DNA of 64,000 nt. It comes from Glycera tridactyla (taxonomy: Eukaryota). Location of the stretch: contig OZ286466.1 in assembly GCA_965644265.1 (NCBI GenBank), positions 29,760,001 to 29,824,000 on the forward strand. Direction: 5' to 3'. Both the position numbers and the translations under genes were made by a program. The notes under the pieces are model-generated. The model worked only from the letters and a program-made list of their open reading frames with translations. It did no database searches and was not told the origin of the DNA. This document shows positions 40,847 to 64,000 of this stretch, in pieces (the stretch's first letter is position 1; every line of letters begins with the position of its first letter).

Positions 40847-43813
40847 TGATTGCTCGTTTACATTCACAAACTCATTTAGTTTGCTAGCCCTTCATTTTTT
40901 CTCCATTTGTTTTCTGTTTCAAGCCGGATTTATCACTCGGCAGCTCCGTGGAGCTGTCACCCTTCAAACACAGATCACACAAGTTCAATGGCTGCTTCGC
41001 TTGATGCAACCAGCAAACCAGAAAAAAAATTCACATTGGCCAAGAACCAAATCGAGACTGCCTTCTTATAGAGTGTGCACTGTACAACAAAGCCAACATC
41101 CTCAACACCTCCCTTGACCACATTTCTTTTCTTTATTGATGCCAATGAAATTCAATAAATATATCAGAAATATAGTCAAATTGAGGAATAAAAATGTAAC
41201 ATGACATTTTCTCAAAAGGTATCTGTTCTCAAGCTCAATCCAGATTGTAGCAACTTTCCCGATTCAATTTCTCATCCAATTCCCAGATTTCTGACAATTT
41301 GCTGAGGATTGACATCAATGCTTCTGGGTATTTTGGGCCACAAAAAATCCAAAACTATGAAATGAGTCTGGAGAAATTCAGTCTCAGATTCATTCAATCC
41401 ATACAAGTTTCAGGTTGCAGCTCACTAAATAATTTCTGCATTCTGACCTTATTTCTGGATGCAGTTCTCCAAATAATATCAATTTCAGTGAGAAATTAAT
41501 TCATTATTCTCTGCAATCCATACCTATTTCTGAGTACAATTAATGAAGAATATTCGTGATCAATCCTGATTTTTAAGGAGCCATTTGCTGGATAATTCTC
41601 ACATTCGTTACCAACATTTGGATGCAGTTTGCAAAATAATCCTCATATTTCACCCTGGAGCAAGAATTTGGGCATCCATTCAATTCATCCTTTGGGTCGA
41701 TACCACCGCTCAATTAACGGGATCTATGTGAGTAATTTCACACATTGTACTATAGATATTGGCAGATAATGTCGAGGATGCCATTCTATGGTGAACAAAA
41801 ATAGTAGTGACGCCAATTTCAAAGAGTATTTCATTGCAATAGTTATTAGAAAAATCCTAATTTCATGGAGTAGCACCAGCAGAAAAATGCAAGAATTTGA
41901 GCTCGAAAAGAGAGATCATTACTCAAACATTGTGATGTATGGAGTATCTGTAGCCTTAGATGTGTTATGTAGACAGATTGTCCATGGGTACTTGGTAAAG
42001 CATCTGTCCACCGGAGAGTGAATTAATAATAAGTATAGCCCATTTGTCAGGTTTCATTATTGAACTCATTCATACTAGGCAAGAAATAGTGGAGAAGCCG
42101 TCTATTCCCTTCTGCTCATCCTTCTCTAATACAAACATTGGCGAGAAAGCACCAGACCCAGAGGATCTAGGCAGCTTTCTGAGAGAGCCTTGATGGCCAG
42201 ACTGTGGAATCCAGGGTGGGACTGCGTGATGGTGCAAGCCACTGAACTTGTGTGATAGCCCCCCGCAGTGACTCACTCTCCAGTTGATCAGCTGCAGAAT
42301 ATGGCATGTGCTTCCAGTAGAGAGAGGCAAGAATTGCAATAGAACAGAGATGGTAAGTATATATATATATGGTGCAACACTCAGAATTCCATGACTTCAC
42401 GAATACAATCAACAAATCTATGCCAATACTATGCGAAAATAAAACGGAGTGGGTGGAAGAGAGAGAAAGTATCTGTAAGTGGATCGGTAAACTTCTCTGA
42501 ATGTCTGCATATAGCCGCAAATTGAAAAGTATTTGAATTCAATTTGCAAGTTATCGATAAATCTGGAATGTCATGTTCGGCTATTTGACGGGGCACCTGT
42601 TGCCAGAGAGCAAACATGGCCGCTCTCCCGGTAGCATTTGACTGACAGCTCAGCTAGTATTTACATTAACCCATTCATTTCTGTATCATTCACTCAACGT
42701 CGAACCATTCAACTGCCCTAGAACCATCCAACGACCCTCGAACCATTCTACACTCCTCGAACCGTTCAACAACATGAACTGGTGGGATTATTTCACATGT
42801 GGATAGGCATTGCTAAAATTTTTATTTATCTATTTATTTATCCATAATTAGACTCATATGAATAAGAAAATAAAAATTCACATTGATCAAAAATTTGACA
42901 AGTAAAAATAATGATGCTGATTCTTAGTAATGATGGCAGAATTCGCTTTTGCATATAAAATCAGGAATATTGTGCTTCAAATTTCATTCAAAAATGTAAT
43001 GCAAAATCTTGATGATTGTCATTTTTGCAGGTAACCAAGCTACTCCTCCAGATTTGGTAAAAATAACATTCAGTTAAAGTTCAGTTAATGCCGGAGAAAT
43101 TGTTCCAATTACTCCTCACCACTTCCCATCCATCGATCAGCGAGAAACCCCAAAAACAATGATTATTGCCAAAACCCCACCCACAAATTTCCGATCAGCA
43201 CACTTGAATGAATGCCTTCCTCATGATCCCCTCCACCTGGACCCCCCCCCCCCCCCCCCCCCCCGCCCCCACCCCTCATCCAGCGAAGAAAGTACTGATC
43301 CACCAAGAAGTCTAACAATATGAAGAACATGATATTCAGAAAGGGTTCCTAATTTTTGGGCTCTTCCATGGAATTCTGAGTGAGCAATTATGTTATTGTG
43401 TCAAAACCATTTTGCTTACTGCCAGCGCAGGTCGGCCACAGAAAAGACGATGCATGGGATGCATTGTACGATGAAACATTTGGATCGATCAAGGCAGATT
43501 GTGCCTTGATCAGCATGAACAGGCCAAACTGGAAGATGTTGGCTTAATGGTATAAAGGTAGAAACATACGATCATTGTGAGTATTAACTCAATCCCATAA
43601 TGCGGGAACGTTGATACCAAATCAAATTTCCAAAATTTCAATGACCACATATTTCAGATTCGTATGATAACCCTCAAATAATTGAGGCAATATTTGTAAC
43701 ATAATGTTTCATCGTACATCACATCCAAAACATTTCCCATCCGGTGGTCCGCTCCGTTCAAGCAATACGCAAGACGGAATCGAGCAGGTTATTGTGAGTA
43801 GTAGACTCCGTAC

Positions 43814-43849
43814 CTCGTCATTCAATGTACCGCCAAGCAGCGCGAGCTC
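43814..43849 (-). CDS. Candidate 36-nt in-frame cassette exon (ELALLGGTLNDE) in the Musashi intron
   Basis: CTGAC branch motif at 43885-43881, AG-free pyrimidine-rich tract ...tttgttgttatctgttccgtttcccttag|, 36 nt with no stop in phase 0, donor GAG|GTACGG. Confidence 0.45.
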
Positions 43850-46800
43850 CTAAGGGAAACGGAACAGATAACAACAAACGGTCAGAAAAAAACACTATAG
43901 CAGGTGCAAAAAACACAGTCAAAAAACAAAAACGTCATCGCAAAAGTCTACCAAAAGCGTCACCGCAGAAGGGGCACAACGCGGCGCGAGCGACACTTGG
44001 CAGATTGTCATCTATAACGTTAATTTGCAATAGATTAACACGTCACAATCATTCAATCCTAACTCTCACGCTACTGTTAAAGGTAATTAACCATCACTGC
44101 AGCATCAAAATTAATCCAGCAAAATTGATAAGAATATCAATATTAACCAAAATTTTGCATTTCCATGGCAACTGGAAGGGTTTTTCGAAAAGTGGCATAT
44201 ATACTGATTAAGGGTACAGATATTTCAACTGACCAAAGATCACTTGGGCCCAGTGTAAATATGTATGTACATATGTATCTTGAGCAATAAAGTTATCTTA
44301 TATCTTATATCAAAGAATGGCGATCTATTCACAACAAGATAAATCTCACAAGAGCCACCTGAAGTATCATTGTGGTACTTCATCACCATAACAACCAAGA
44401 TGGCAGCACATGCCAAAACCATGACATATTTTATGCTTTATCTCAGGCAATTCTGGTCCGATTTTCATAATCTCAACACCAAAATGATCAGTATTAAGAT
44501 TCCCTATCAATATATGATAGTTCCATGAGACTCTATGGGAAAAAATATCCAGAATCATGCAGATCTTTTCACATCAGTTTCCTTCAGCTGTGCAAAGTTC
44601 CACATGAGATCCTGTCTGACAGGCCGGATGAGCGAATTTCATCATTTCCGTAAATCAAATTGCTGGACAAAATTGACCACATTTATGATGGGGGTGTAGC
44701 AGCATAGCATTGCAAATGTTACTATTATATTTCAATTCAATGAGAACTATGATTCTTGTCCAAGAGATGCATTGTGAGCAAAGAATGGGTCTGCCGAAAT
44801 CTCTTTGCTCAATCACTCAGGGGAGAACAAGCAGCAATATAAATAGACATCTAGTGATTCAATAACTAAAACACTATGCCACACCCAATCAGGACTCAGG
44901 TAAACTGTGACAACCGCCACTAGGGTAAAATTTCTCTTCATTTCTCCAGAATATTACTTGAGAGCAATCAATTTGAAAAAGAAGATTCCTTTCTGGAATA
45001 GGTATGAGATTGCACAGAAAATGCCATTCACCATTGTGAAGTCAGAAATTACCATAGTTTACTCACATTTGGTGAGGATTTCCTCTGGTCAGGTACAGAA
45101 TGATTTCAATTCTATACACTGGTAATTTCATAAAACGCTCTTATCACTAGAATGAGACTTCATTGAAGAGACCAAAGATGTGACATTGGTTGGCACTGCC
45201 ATTTTTTGAGCAGACTGCAGGTTTTTGTGACATGCAGGGTGGCCTCCCAAACATAACCTGAAGTACATCATCCATCCTCATATGGGAACCAGTGTCTTTC
45301 AAATCAGAATGAATATAAAGGATATGAGGTGCAGTGGTTGTCATAGCAACCTGGAAAACTCACTTCAAACCGTTTTGGGTAACTCAACTTTGCACAGATC
45401 TTGAGCCACTTTCTTCGAAAAATTGTTCAGTGATGGCATTGCCCAGGTTAAGTATGGCATAAAAGCAAGAAAGCCACCATGTGTGATCCTTCAATATACA
45501 TTCAAATTGATGAGCAACAAAGATGCCAACCTTTGATGGACAGAAAGAGTAGCGCTACCAATTTCAAAAATTAGCGCTACCACTATTTGCAGAGGAATAT
45601 TAGGACAATTTTTTAGAGAATCATCACTCAAAAATGACAAGAATTTAGGCTTAAAAAGAAAATCCACTGCTATGAAATCATATCGGTTGGCATCTATGAT
45701 GAATTTGGGGGTTGCAATCCCCTTCAGATGATGGATAGTGTTGGTTTGGTTTTTTAGCAGTTCGTTTCTATTTACAAGATCACACGTGATGCGTATTCCT
45801 GCCACATCAACAACGCTGCTAACATTCAAATGTTACGTACGTATGCTAGGATCAATAAATGCAGAGCAGATAACTACACCCAAATGAACACAAGTTAAAT
45901 TCACAAGGTGCTCTCTTTTTTCTCGTTGCCAAAAAGACATTGCAGGACAAACAAACTACAAAGGCAATAGAAATACATCAGACTGAGCAACCCGTTAAAT
46001 CTTTGGACACAAGAAAACATCTAGTCTAAATCGTAGAAAAGTATCACTCTATCACAGGTCCAGTTTTCGACATGTTTTCGTCCTTCACAACAAATTGTAC
46101 CACAGATACAGACGGTCAAATCTATGCATTCTGAAGAAACCTTACATAACGGTTCTGAAAATATCCCAAAGGCCTGGGTTTGTCATTTCCGGGTAACATA
46201 AAAAATTTATCTTTGGTATAAAAGCAAGAACACATAGTTGATAAATATATAATCATTCCATCGACATTGTAAGACATTTCATTCAACAAATGTTTTTTCA
46301 CGACATCAATCAACAATCATTGTATTGTTAATGGGATAAACCCTGTACCAACTTGGTGATCTGCTTTGTGTCAACACATGTCAAAATACACAGGAAAATT
46401 TGTACTTATATCACAGAGTATCATGTTATTACCTGATACTAACTGATCTATACCCTTTATTGCGACAGAATACAAGTCCAGCAATTCCTTTAACCAGGAT
46501 TATAGTCTCATGAATGATCTCAGATTTACAGGGGGTCACCGATCAGGATGAATATGGTAATACCAATATTGACACCCTAAGTTCTTGCCCCCTTCGCCCT
46601 ATATTCAACCGCCATCCTGACTATTTTTATTTACCAGGATGACTATTTTTATTTGCTGCACCTCATCGCACCTCAATCCGTTTCTATTGAAGTGGTACAT
46701 GGACAAATAACGTAGGAGACTTGGTGTTGTCAACTTCAGTTGTACACAATCCAAGTCATGGCAGCATCCTTTTTTTATTTTGCTTCACCTTTTTCACTGC

Positions 46801-49800
46801 ATCATTAGATCCATGGAGTAAACCCCCAACATCATACCTGGGGGATTATATGCCACCCTCTCATTTTCATATCCCATACCTGGTAGGTGGAAAGATATAA
46901 TGATTCGGGTAACTAAGAGTACTATGACACAAGAGTACAGTTAAACCTGCAACGAGATACTGTTGCCCTAAATGTCACTGAAATGTGGTCTCTCAAAAGA
47001 GGTGGTCTCTTGTCAGACATATATTTGACTATGACAGATTAGAAGCTGGTGTGAGGAAGTCGTCCCCTGTCAGAGATGTCTGTCATCAGGGGGCCTCTCT
47101 TCGTGGGTTTCACTGAGGTCTGGACCACACAGCTCGGCGGTCTCAGTGGGACTCACATTGTGATGTCACAATTCGATGCCATGTGGGTTGCTAAGGACTC
47201 TTCTGGGTACAGATCAGATCATATTCCCACAGAAATCCTCCAATCGCTACAAGTCCTAGTCCTATTGGTATCACATCATGTCTACTCCTACAAAACATCC
47301 ATGTGCAATGGTGAAAAATCTGTTAAATCTCGCTCTCAAATCTTCCAAGATTCCCTGCAAATATATGTAATTCACTTGACCCTGGCTAAACAGCATCTCA
47401 TAGTGGATCAATCCGCAGCAACTCGGAACACGCCAAGGTTCCAACCCTTCAGTCCAAACTGTCAAACTCCCCCCCCCCCCCCCCCCCACCACTACCCAGG
47501 GCTAGTAGATTTGCATAGTAGTAAGGTCAACTCTTTTTTCACTGTGGCCAGGTAGGAAATGATCGAACTGTGCAGGTGAACAGCTAGGAAAGGCACTATC
47601 CAGAATTTGGCAGGTGGATTTCGATTCCACCTGCCAAGGGGGCAGGTAGATTCTCAGGATGTTTCCGAGCATTTTATCCTCTGATCTCATCCCCACTTCT
47701 GATGATGAGGACAATTATGAACAGATCACAATAAAAATATGCCATCGGGGATGTCAGTTCTTTTTGCCCCTCACAAAGATGAAGAGTTCACCATCTGGAT
47801 TTTGGTACGGCAGATGGTTGTGATTTTTGTAAATACAAAAAAGTATCTAAACTCTCACCATCAGCACCTATGGCAGGTCATTCCAACCGCCAAGGTTACT
47901 TCACTCCGAATAACAAGTGACTCATGCACATGTTCTACCTTCTAACATGGATATAATGTATGAAAGACAAAACAGCCATGAGCACATCTGCAGTGATTGA
48001 AAATACAAGTGTCAATGGCCCCTTTCACTGAAATACAGATGTATATATTAGAAAAATCATCAGGAGCTGCTCCCTGCTGCTGCAATTTCTTGCATGCTTC
48101 ACAGCAGTTGAGTGCAGCTGCTGACATCTGGGACTTCTTCCATCTTTGTGAAATGAGCCTGAAGCAATCCAGATGGCAGCACTCTCAAGTAGGGGTGTAG
48201 AACAAGTATATGCCCATGTTTGGAGAAAGTAGCTCTCTCTCCACTGATTCTGGTCCGATTTTGTTGATTCAAAATCAAAACTACTCGGTATACAATTCCC
48301 TTTTCAGCCATGCATACAGCATTGTTCTCCCAAATGACAGTAATCTGTGGAACAATTACATCCCTGGAGATTCTCAGTCACCACAAAGCCACCATACTAG
48401 ACTATGTGCCTCATGTATTTTCTTCATCAAGGTTTTAACATTTACGAGTGTAGAGCTGCAACACTCCGAGATGGCCCCCACATGTGACATGTCTGCAAAC
48501 ACCAGCTTGAGTCGCATCTAATCGACACCGATACTTTGATATTCTCTGATATTTGATCCCCTTCCACCAACACTTCACCCTCGCTGCCAGGCTTCTCTCC
48601 CCGGCAAGGAACAAAGACCCCGATACCCCGGTACCACTACAAAAACCATGTCTCCTCCAGTGGAAGCTTGCACCACGGTGAAGGTCACAGGGTCATTGGG
48701 TCAACAACGGGCAGGGATGCCAATCCAACCTGACTCCGGTAACTGGGACAATATGGGCTAAATCGGAAGCCGTAAAAAACCCAGAGCAAAACCACAATAT
48801 TTGGGTGGCCCCGTCAAGTCACCTCTTCACTCTGAGGAAAATAAGCAGTGATACGTCTGGGAATCACCAGCAGGAAGTGCATGGTGGGGCGCGATTAAAA
48901 ACTGGAACGATATCCGCGACACCCTTACATATGTATTTTCACTCATGTGGTTACTTAACCTGTAAACCCTGCCAAACTTAATGCTCTGTGCCAGCTGTTG
49001 TCCCATTGCTGCTTCGTTTCTATGGTTCCCCAGCATCTAGTGTTCAGGGTGTGTGAGAGTGATGCCTGCAGGAGACAGAGCATTTAGCTTCCATAGGCCA
49101 GGAACACATGGCTCAATACATACATGTACCTCAAATCCGTCTAAACCTATCAAACATCACACTACATCCAATAGCCAAAATGGCCAACCAAAGGAGGCGT
49201 GGCTGCTGGTGGCAATTTTGTATCCTTCGGGAAAATGAAAATCCTAGGTAGTTCTGTTATATATACAAACACTAGATTCCCATATAATGTAGCCAGGGAG
49301 ACAGTATGACTTCAGGTTATCATACCAGTAAAAATAATAGAGCACGCAGTGGCGGATACAGGGGGAGGGCACATGCCCCCCCCCCCCTTCAGCCTGATCA
49401 TAGCCTTTTATTTATTTTTTTATCCAAATTATGGTCGAATTATTAAGTTATTTGTCCCATTATTGGGTCATGCTATTTGGAAAGATTCTTGGGTGAAAAA
49501 AACACACAGTTTACTAAAAGGGAGAACAACTGCCGAGGGAGAGGGCAACTGATGGCAGCGCAAAAGTGTGAAATCGGCAGCAATCATGATGTGAGAATTA
49601 GACACCAGAGGAGCCTGCAATGGAGCAAGGAGGTCATCGCCAACGGCAACCACGCTCTACCATCGCCATCTATTCCAGCAGCCATCAAATTCCCCCGCTG
49701 CCACCTGGCCAATTGCTCTAACCACATTACTGCTACCCCTCGTAAAAAATTCAAACATCGGACAATTTCCTAATCGGATTCTCCAACATTTAAATGAAGA

Positions 49801-60680: not shown

Positions 60681-61366
60681 ATGTGCCTCAAATCCATTGA
60701 TGGCAATTCACTCCAATCATATGTGCTTCAAATTCATTGATGGCAATTCACTCCAAATCACAAGTGCCTCAAACACATTGATGGCAATTCACTCCTATCA
60801 CATGTGCCTCAAATTCATTGATGGCAATTCACTCCAAATCACAAGTGCCTCAAACACATTGATGGCAATTCACTCCAATCATATATGCCTCAAATTAATT
60901 GATGGTCATTCATTCTAATCATAGGTGCCTCAAATCCATTGATGGCAATTCACTCCAATCACAAGGGCCTCAAACACATTGATGGCAATTCACTCCGAAT
61001 CACAAGTGCCTCAAATCCATTGATGGCAATTCACTCCAATCATATGTGCCTCAAATTAATTGATGGTCATTCATTCTAATCATAGGTGCCTCAAATCCAT
61101 TGATGGCAATTCACTCCAATCACAAGGGCCTCAAACACATTGATGGCAATTCACTCCGAATCACAAGTGCCTCAAATCCATTGATGGCAATTCACTCCAA
61201 TCATATGTGCCTCAAATTAATTGATGGCAATTCACTCCAATCATATGTGCCTCAAATTAATTGATGGCAATTCACTCCAAATCACAAGTGCCTCAAACTC
61301 ATTGATGGCAATTCACTCCAAATCACAAGTGCCTCAGATTAATTGATGACAATTCACTCCAATCAT
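60681..61366. repeat. 40/41-bp minisatellite, about 17 copies
   Basis: Unit atgtgcctcaaatccattgatggcaattcactccaatcat repeated with variants. Confidence 0.97.
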
Positions 61367-62070
61367 GTCTGCCTTCATATGACTGCTACTAATAGCTACT
61401 AATAGCTACTGATAGCTACACTTTTCTGTATAATGTGCCTCCATGTGAATCATAGCCATTCACTTCAAAGCCATGTGCCCTGATTGAACCATATCACTTC
61501 TCCCAGGACTAAAGGAGATGTGTTGGAGTATACCCAAATGATGCCACTACCAGCGGCATGATACTTTAGGAAGCCATATTATGACCTGGAATGGACTGTA
61601 GCAGGATGCAGTACCAGTCCCCTCTAAAAAGCATAATAATTGACTACCAGATCGTCATGGCGTAATATAGGGGTGAAAATCGTAATCATTACACAAAAAT
61701 CGTAATGGTTGGCATCTCTGGGGTTCTAAAGAATACATTCATGATCCCATTTCTCTAGTTCTGCCAATGAAATGTGCCTTAAATATTTCCATTTTCCATG
61801 ACCATTATTCACAGAATGAAGCAGTAGTGTGGATCCATCCTCTGACGTTTAGAACTAAAATTATTGAAATTAAGATTAAATTATTTTAGTGATTTTTTGA
61901 GTGTGATGATGAGTAATGATGTCAGTAATCAGTAATGATGTCAGTAATTGTGGAAACTGACAAAGATAATCTAGCCTGTATCACCTAATGACGATCCAAG
62001 AAAGAGTAATTACTTCATCCTGATGTTGTTAGCAACTGTGTGCAACTGGAGGGGGGGGGGGGGTAGTAGT

Positions 62071-63021
62071 TAGGCCTTGAACGATCTACCACGGATACGA
62101 ATCGATACGTATCGTGATACGCTGCTCATGATACGATATCTCCACGATATATCTCAAGTATTTTGCGAAAACATCAAGAAATTAGCCTATCTTTCCTGGC
62201 GCCCCACACTCGTAATAATAGTCAGAAACTTACCAAAAAATTCGCCCATGCAGATTGAGGGATGCCAAAGAACCGGATGACCTCGGATTTCCGATAAGAC
62301 ACAGTTAAATCATATTTGCGTACGGCCAAACATGTGGAGTGAAGCGGGCGAAAATGAGGGACTCGCTGGAAAAACAAGACCTTCACGGCCTCGTGCTTTC
62401 GCCATGCAATGAATATGAATGATACCTGATTAAATCCCTATATGGAACGAATCCCGGTAACATTGTGCAGCATACTGTGCAAACCATTTAGCAATACATT
62501 GTACAGTTTCCTCATGATGGCGTGGTGAAAAACTGTTTTGCGACCAAAAGTGAGTGAAAAATCAAGATGGCGTCCGTCGGAATAACACCACGTGCGTTTC
62601 ACACTGCTTGCCTTTAAGCGCGAAACACGGCAAGAAACATTTGTTTTAGTGCTCAAATATGTATGCCAATCGGTTCCCAGGGCCTCGAATATGACAGTTT
62701 GAATGATAAATTCCGAAAATGCAACAAAATGATTGATTTGAGTTGCTATTCGTAAAATAATTCTCGCAAGCGCGAGATGACAACAAGATGCGCAGAAGAC
62801 GTACTTTCATTGGTTCATTCACCCTGGCTGCGCAGGTGTCAAAGCAACATGGCTGCACCCTCGAACAAATGGATTTATCACGTTCGAGGTGTATTTCTTG
62901 CTATTTTCATCAATTAAACAATTTGACGATATATCGTGGACTTTTTCGGGTGTATCGTGACCAGGCTGATACGGAAAAAATAATCGATCCGTGAGTGTAT
63001 CGGCGAATCGTTCAAGGCCTA
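62071..63021. mobile_element. Non-autonomous hAT-type DNA transposon (951 bp)
   Basis: Perfect 15-bp TIR TAGGCCTTGAACGAT / ATCGTTCAAGGCCTA; 8-bp TSD GTAGTAGT (62063-62070 and 63022-63029); subterminal gatacg/cgatat repeats; no transposase ORF. Confidence 0.92.
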
Positions 63022-64000
63022 GTAGTAGTAGTATGGCTTCTGCAATTCGAGGGTAGAATTTGAACAATCACCAGTGATAGTGACAACTAAACCACTCAAA
63101 GCTGACAGCCCTGCTCACATGTGTGACATGCACCCATGAACCATTTCAATGGGCCTGCTATTTCACCATCACTGCGAACCATAGTCGTAAAAGTGCAGCG
63201 ATTAGCAGGCTATTATATTTTTATATTCTGTTCCCATCATGCTCTGAAAAGTAAAAAATGCTGCTAAGTGGGTATATATACTAGAGCTCATCAACTTCCG
63301 ACATAATATCACTTTGTAGAGCCAGATTCACGCCAGCTTAACCTCTCATTGCGGAATCCTAAATCTCGGAAATGGCGCAGAAATACTGTTGGAAAATAGA
63401 ATGTCCTTCATTAATGCATTCCAAGATGGTCTATGTTGGGAGGTGAGGAAGGGNNNNNNNNNNNNNNNNNNNNNNNNNNNNNNNNNNNNNNNNNNNNNNN
63501 NNNNNNNNNNNNNNNNNNNNNNNNNNNNNNNNNNNNNNNNNNNNNNNNNNNNNNNNNNNNNNNNNNNNNNNNNNNNNNNNNNNNNNNNNNNNNNNNNNNN
63601 NNNNNNNNNNNNNNNNNNNNNNNNNNNNNNNNNGATGAAAATAATGACACACCATTATTCAAAACAATGATATTAAAATGTTTGCATAATTTTCACACAA
63701 AACAATCACACGAGAATTTTATGCATACAGCACCGATCAGCCCCATGCCGATGACGTCAATGAGATACCAGATATCCCGGATATGTGGCGGCGTGCATCC
63801 ATTGGGTGTGAATCATGCGGATTTAACGCAATCTTTACAATCATTTCACGATCCAACATCCAAAGATGGCCGACATGCAATGCATTTTCTACAACACCGC
63901 ACTAGCCATAATTCTGTCAAAATCGGTGGAACGGTTCCTGCATGTTTGAATCAATATCCTCCTCCCTGGCCCACAAACCTCTCCGTCTCAGTGCACAAGG

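Follow-up and report, generated by a model that had tools for sequence, protein, structure and literature searches.

Is the 36-nucleotide (nt) open frame in a very long intron of the Musashi gene of Glycera tridactyla a cassette exon that lengthens the linker between the RNA-binding domains RRM1 and RRM2, or a chance pairing of splice signals? The frame lies in a stretch of 64,000 nt of contig OZ286466.1 (positions 29,760,001 to 29,824,000, forward strand), which is called the window here and to which all coordinates below refer. A sequence-only reading of the window had proposed the exon from its splice signals, its reading frame and its CpG-rich surroundings. Our analysis favours, with a probability of about 0.65, a chance pseudo-exon inside a CpG-preserved block that is itself probably regulatory or hypomethylated. 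That the stretch is a cassette exon, by which the RRM1-RRM2 linker would gain 12 residues, is formally possible; this reading stands unsupported rather than refuted.

The host gene is on the minus strand, and the 93-nt exon that opens RRM2 follows 40 kb downstream of the candidate. The features on which the question turns are the following.

3864..3772, minus strand: real downstream exon of 93 nt, phase 0, encoding the first 31 residues of RRM2 and starting MITRTKK
43849..43814, minus strand: candidate 36-nt open frame, read directly, with an AG acceptor and a GT donor at its ends
43885..43850, minus strand: acceptor region, with a CTGAC branch-like site at 43885-43881, an AG-free pyrimidine tract and cccttag
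43813..43805, minus strand: donor, intron side gtacggagt after the exon end GAG, in agreement with a canonical 5' splice site

Read from the minus strand, the 36 nt are GAGCTCGCGCTGCTTGGCGGTACATTGAATGACGAG, which is stop-free and translates as ELALLGGTLNDE. The acceptor at 43849, cccttag/GAG (the slash marks a splice junction here and below), has the properties of a canonical 3' splice site. Its positions -25 to -3 are 82% C/T, and CTGAC starts at -36, thus placing the branch A at -33, with a U-rich stretch upstream. The nearest upstream AG stands at -47, and the sequence is AG-free from there to the acceptor. Inclusion would preserve the frame, the length being a multiple of three (3n), stop-free and in phase 0 with the downstream exon, which opens at 3864 on the codon ATG. 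The upstream exon lies outside the window, and its phase was taken from homologues, which place the junction between K and M. The in-frame codon preceding the 36 nt is TAG, and no ATG occurs within them. The branch site, AG-free tract, acceptor, 36-nt frame, donor and phase-0 fit claimed by the sequence-only reading were all borne out by the direct reading of the minus strand, with the upstream phase given by homology, and the sequence observation is confirmed.

The identity of the downstream exon is clear, as its 31 residues gave Musashi-1 RBD2 (5x3y) as the best single-stretch match in the PDB. No RRM1 exon was found within the 64-kb window. The arrangement resembles that of Drosophila Rbp6, in which exon 7 also has 93 nt, a 42-bp exon is followed by a 36-kb intron and the 93-bp exon, a 36-bp exon is present elsewhere in the gene, and four transcripts, C-F, contain RRM2 only (PMC3507872).

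The splice signals of the candidate were compared with those expected by chance, using a crude position matrix based on general metazoan frequencies and suited to ranking only. By this matrix the candidate acceptor and donor scored 8.3 and 8.5 bits, and those of the real RRM2 exon 7.9 and 9.4 bits. Acceptor-donor pairs with a spacing of 18-300 nt were then searched at thresholds equal to the candidate's own scores, on the sense strand and on control strands consisting of the window antisense and both strands of 86.5 kb of the intron of a relative (237 kb in all). Five pairs were found on the sense strand, four of which have acceptor 25919 in common. The antisense gave none, and the two strands of the relative gave one and three, corresponding to about one pair per 64 kb. 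As the chance of a 36-nt pair being both 3n and open is about 0.19, roughly 0.2-0.3 in-frame exon-like pairs are expected per 96-kb intron. At thresholds of 6 bits for both sites, six in-frame pairs appeared on the sense strand (the real exon, four at about 22.5-23.1 kb and the candidate), and 1-2 on each control strand. The candidate is good, yet not statistically remarkable, and does not clearly exceed chance.

Conservation was assessed in the closest available genome, ENA ERZ25767047, on the 4.1-Mb contig ctg39072, of which record 636218-739612 was taken. Starting from the orthologous RRM2 exon, the contig was walked upstream in 10-kb steps with called open reading frames (ORFs) as anchors, covering 103 kb, of which 93 kb lie upstream of the exon. 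The RRM2 exon of the relative shares 29 of 31 residues and 81.5% DNA identity with the window exon. The intron upstream of it is longer than 93 kb, and the exon carrying the end of RRM1 lies beyond the walked stretch. When the 103 kb were compared with the whole window by blastn, the RRM2 exon alone aligned. Searches of 43600-44150 against the same 103 kb by blastn (word 7) and nhmmer gave nothing better than E 0.4. Among AG..GT-flanked open frames of 24-60 nt in the 93 kb upstream, those resembling the candidate peptide were chance-level matches only. One of them, a short ORF ending ..KMALSHGTLN at 53.6 kb upstream, was rejected for its weak donor and its DNA score of 18 vs a null median of 20. 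Frame-preserving conservation, the lack of which the sequence-only reading had named as refuting the exon, was not found in this one distant relative, and by the same comparison the surrounding block does not qualify as a conserved non-coding element. No DNA alignment to the relative was seen along 60 kb of the window intron, including 22.1-22.6 kb.

Transcript and protein collections were searched for the insert. A search for sequencing runs matching 43600-44100 gave no RNA run. Contigs of three sets of about 1 Mb each, from one 2014 sample labelled with this species, had no match on 40850-46849, in a test with almost no power. An exact 24-mer across the hypothetical 43814/3864 junction had no match in JGI metagenome contigs. 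No protein with the exact 31-residue exon was found among 50%-identity representatives or in word searches spanning 38-763 residues, and an exact look-up of the window ORFs gave no match either, which shows that the protein collection does not include this species. The closest named sequences come from annelids and point to an annelid source of the window. The Musashi of Platynereis dumerilii shares 27 of the 31 residues of the exon and a Lamellibrachia entry 26, and the entries of Capitella, Owenia and Dimorphilus have the common linker type of 13-15 residues. A full-length sequence, found by a degenerate 13-residue pattern, was a complete transcript of a 437-residue Musashi from an environmental sample (JGI Ga0307400_10023035), with 28 of 31 residues of the exon as in the window and an annelid-type linker of 14 residues. 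It runs without an insert, ...IDPKVAFPRRPNATSAPK/MVTRTKKIFCGG..., with the junction ...FPRRPNATSAPK/MVTRTKK.... An insert at this junction was absent in all of the approximately 12 annelid-type Musashi sequences, including those of Capitella, Owenia, Dimorphilus and Platynereis.

The block around the candidate was also borne out as described by the sequence-only reading, both in its CpG content and in its neighbouring motifs.

43741..44045, no strand assigned: CpG-preserved block containing the candidate, CpG observed/expected ratio (o/e) 1.41 over 305 nt

The median o/e of the window is 0.38 in 400-nt windows, and the 95th percentile is 1.07. The block resembles a CpG island in that its o/e is far above that of its surroundings, and its GC content of 0.46 is below the vertebrate criterion of 0.5. 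About 70 CpG-rich nt of the block follow the donor of the candidate. TGACG half-sites at 43816, 43933, 43958 and 44041 form the densest such cluster of the window, where the background is 0.91 per kb. The TAAT-type motifs TTAATTTGCAATAGATTAAC (44020) and GTAATTAAC (44083) are found on the plus strand at the upstream edge of the block. The window contains about five CpG islands, at 2100-4400, 15400-16200, 27200-28300, 43600-44100 and 62000-63100, and the four other than that of the candidate have o/e values of 1.1-1.9. Within the 64-kb window the block has no second copy, and it shows no tandem repetition. Searches in it for a repeat or mobile element, a tRNA or an Rfam RNA found none. A plus-strand ORF of 128 residues at 43825-44211 was rejected, being A/K-rich and unsupported as coding. 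Where a gene body is methylated, the preservation of CpGs may reflect hypomethylation (a regulatory element), selective constraint or youth. CpG preservation does not discriminate an alternative exon with conserved flanks from an enhancer.

Based on these results, we propose that a good acceptor and a good donor have fallen together by chance around an open frame of 3n length, an outcome to be expected in long introns. The block lies inside a Musashi intron of about 96 kb, in a gene body that is otherwise CpG-depleted and presumably germline-methylated. Rather than forming the flanks of a coding exon, the block would more probably act in cis as a hypomethylated regulatory element of enhancer or promoter type, in which TGACG and TAAT motifs are clustered. 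In the main mRNA, the upstream linker exon would be expected to be joined straight to 3864, as in the annelid-type Musashi sequences. We infer that splicing skips the candidate and that the block has a regulatory role.

The same question was approached from the linker itself, by a survey of 265 Musashi sequences having both landmarks, in which residues were counted between xDPK and M(V/I)TRTKK. The spacing is 10 residues in 222 of the 265 and 9 residues in 2, and 26 sequences have 13-15 residues. The remaining 15 sequences, with 11 distinct linker peptides, have spacings of 18-40 residues. Nine of these 11 long linkers are clean inserts directly after ...PK of the linker exon, as listed below; P0067 and P0148 were rejected as inserts, having diverged linkers that are not clean.

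Ostrea edulis isoforms X2, X7, X9, X13 and X24 (X7 = XP_048738452.1): +23 residues
Arctopsyche grandis Rbp6 X7 (XP_077299545.1): +21 residues
Rhipicephalus microplus protein: +25 residues
Anas MSI2 X30: +8 residues
Camelus: +11 residues
Kogia X15: +14 residues
Geotrypetes (caecilian): +29 residues
Microcaecilia X3 (caecilian): +30 residues
Logan protein P0113: +11 residues, 203 residues on a 911-nt contig, spanning both RRMs

P0113 probably represents a spliced transcript. The insert-bearing set comprises P0051, P0299, P0300, P0305, P0311, P0107, P0143, P0113, P0205, P0176, P0206, P0241 and P0242. The inserts, of 8-30 residues, are unlike one another and unlike ELALLGGTLNDE. A kinship with the tick insert (LAL-LGGTLN vs LALALDGNLN) was considered and rejected, the shuffle p value being 0.06 alone and 0.11 over all inserts. 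Since the inserts are related neither to each other nor to the candidate, they indicate that exonisation happens at this junction and are not proof that the candidate is used. The survey shows that this intron has commonly undergone exonisation, for the most part in single lineages, and that the linker-exon idea is not new in kind. The inserts may be recurrent exonisation in one giant intron. Such common exonisation lowers the surprise of any single candidate, and raises the question of noise versus convergent tuning.

Several observations weigh against a chance pseudo-exon. The splice signals of the candidate are on par with those of the real RRM2 exon, its acceptor ranks sixth on the 64-kb sense strand, and no other pair on the four strands, about 300 kb, is both 3n and open at the thresholds set by the candidate. 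The relative is too distant for any intronic DNA to align, so that a lineage-specific exon would be missed. The CpG island at 2100-4400 surrounds the real RRM2 exon, and preserved CpGs could thus just as well be the sign of an alternative exon under constraint, flanks included. The RNA tests, which drew on a single sample with three sets of contigs of about 1 Mb, are nearly powerless. Predicted inserts at exactly ...PK/M(V/I)TRTKK are found in at least nine other species. Very short exons in huge introns are also the rule in this gene family, as with the 36-bp exon of Drosophila Rbp6 (PMC3507872).

A real cassette exon specific to this lineage, spliced in ahead of the RRM2 exon and after the linker exon, and perhaps included only in some tissues or at a low level, appears unlikely. 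With it, the linker would grow by 12 residues, to about 26 if it is otherwise of the annelid type with about 14. The strong splice signals, the AG exclusion zone, the branch site and the phase-0 3n open frame are what such an exon would have, and its CpG-preserved flanks are like those at the real RRM2 exon; no including transcript was seen, however, in the three contig sets or the JGI junction search, both of very low power, and the exon is unconserved in the one relative and absent from the approximately 12 annelid-type sequences. Precedent exists in the inserts at the same junction in other animals, which are unrelated to the candidate, and in the very short exons within very long introns of the gene family (PMC3507872), whereas such pairs are expected by chance at an appreciable rate. 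That the candidate is a regulated cassette exon, as one of recurrent independent linker-exon gains across phyla in one giant phase-0 intron, is still more doubtful.

The block could also act as an internal promoter, with only the donor in use and a transcript in which 43814 is joined to 3864. In that case the 36 nt would belong to the 5' untranslated region, and translation from the ATG at 3864 would give an RRM2-only protein. This is very improbable, although several features are consistent with it: the block is CpG-island-like and holds the densest TGACG cluster of the window, the donor is strong, and the TAG just before the 36 nt, with no in-frame ATG, would suit a non-coding first exon for which the ATG at 3864 serves. 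The four RRM2-only transcripts of Drosophila Rbp6 also offer a parallel (PMC3507872). However, the three contig sets gave no RNA support, with almost no power, the GC content of the block is only 0.46, and ATGs upstream in the block would burden the leader. The least probable explanation is that the block was inserted recently, as a fragment of a young mobile element with undecayed CpGs, in which the exon-like signals are incidental. The elevated CpG o/e within a methylated gene body would fit this too, and an imperfect inverted repeat of 31 nt (43450-43480 and 43703-43733) stands beside the block; but the absence of a second copy in the 64-kb window, of a tRNA or Rfam match and of coding potential argues otherwise.

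Other features of the window were observed along with the candidate. On the minus strand at 22555-23125, four in-frame exon-like acceptor-donor pairs are clustered, and the CpG o/e at 22.1-22.6 kb is 0.69. The minus-strand acceptor 25919, tttcctttatccag/GT, is among the strongest of the window with 9.8 bits, and is followed by four donors of 9.6-11.1 bits at 49, 204, 246 and 300 nt downstream. All frames from this acceptor contain stops, and it could belong to a non-coding or poison exon or be a repeat-derived site. In the CpG island at 27.2-28.3 kb the GC content rises to 0.65, and its minus strand contains long open frames rich in Arg and Ala. Two minisatellites are present, one at 60681-61374 with a 40-nt unit repeated about 17 times and higher-order periods of 121 and 161, and one at 24196-24565 with seven copies of a 53-nt unit at 98% identity.

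If the exon were used, the insert of 12 residues would roughly double a linker that is nearly invariant in length across animals, and could alter the choice of UAG-site pairs bound by Musashi. The linker of human MSI-1, of about 10 residues, contributes to RNA binding as seen by nuclear magnetic resonance, and proline substitutions there lower the affinity (PMC12342889). As substitutions in this linker lower the RNA affinity, a hydrophobic insert of 12 residues would not be neutral. The functional proposal of the sequence-only reading is thus reasonable in principle, but presupposes inclusion. Use of the exon would give a product 36 nt longer, containing GAGCTCGCG...AATGACGAG, with an overhang at 3864 ending ...TTGAATGACGAG. 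If linker exons have indeed been gained recurrently across oyster, insect, tick, birds, mammals and caecilians, repeated selection for the spacing or flexibility of the RRMs would be indicated.

The candidate can be compared with several known systems. The linker-insert isoforms of Ostrea edulis and Arctopsyche grandis use exactly the same phase-0 junction, and their inserts are likewise short and frame-preserving. They rest on gene models or transcripts of other species, whereas the present candidate rests on genomic sequence. The internal first exons of transcripts C-F of Drosophila Rbp6 lie, like the candidate, upstream of the RRM2 acceptor, here at 3864, which the donor of the candidate could feed; unlike them, the candidate also possesses a strong acceptor.

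A recursive splice site, or RS-exon, consists of an acceptor directly joined to a reconstituted donor, AG/GTRAGT, and is expected in very long introns. The candidate acceptor does not have this form, reading AG/GAGCTC, and better matches are found at 18173 and 4989, where minus-strand acceptors run straight into GTGAGG or GTGAGA (AG/GTGAG). Neural microexons are, according to Irimia and colleagues, reportedly dependent on SRRM4/eMIC. An SRRM4/eMIC microexon has 3-27 nt (up to about 51) and a UGC close upstream of the 3' splice site. The candidate is similar to these in being a short frame-preserving exon in the gene of a neural RNA-binding protein, with a strong donor and a long stretch rich in U upstream. 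Its 36 nt exceed the classic range of 3-27 nt, however, the nearest TGC motifs (-53 and -59) lie upstream of the branch site and not next to the acceptor, and it does not belong to this class. The pseudo-exons of long metazoan introns likewise have good 3' and 5' sites at exon-like spacing and are unconserved, as is the candidate deep in its intron of about 96 kb. The candidate differs from most of them in being 3n, open and phase-compatible, and in lying within a CpG-preserved island.

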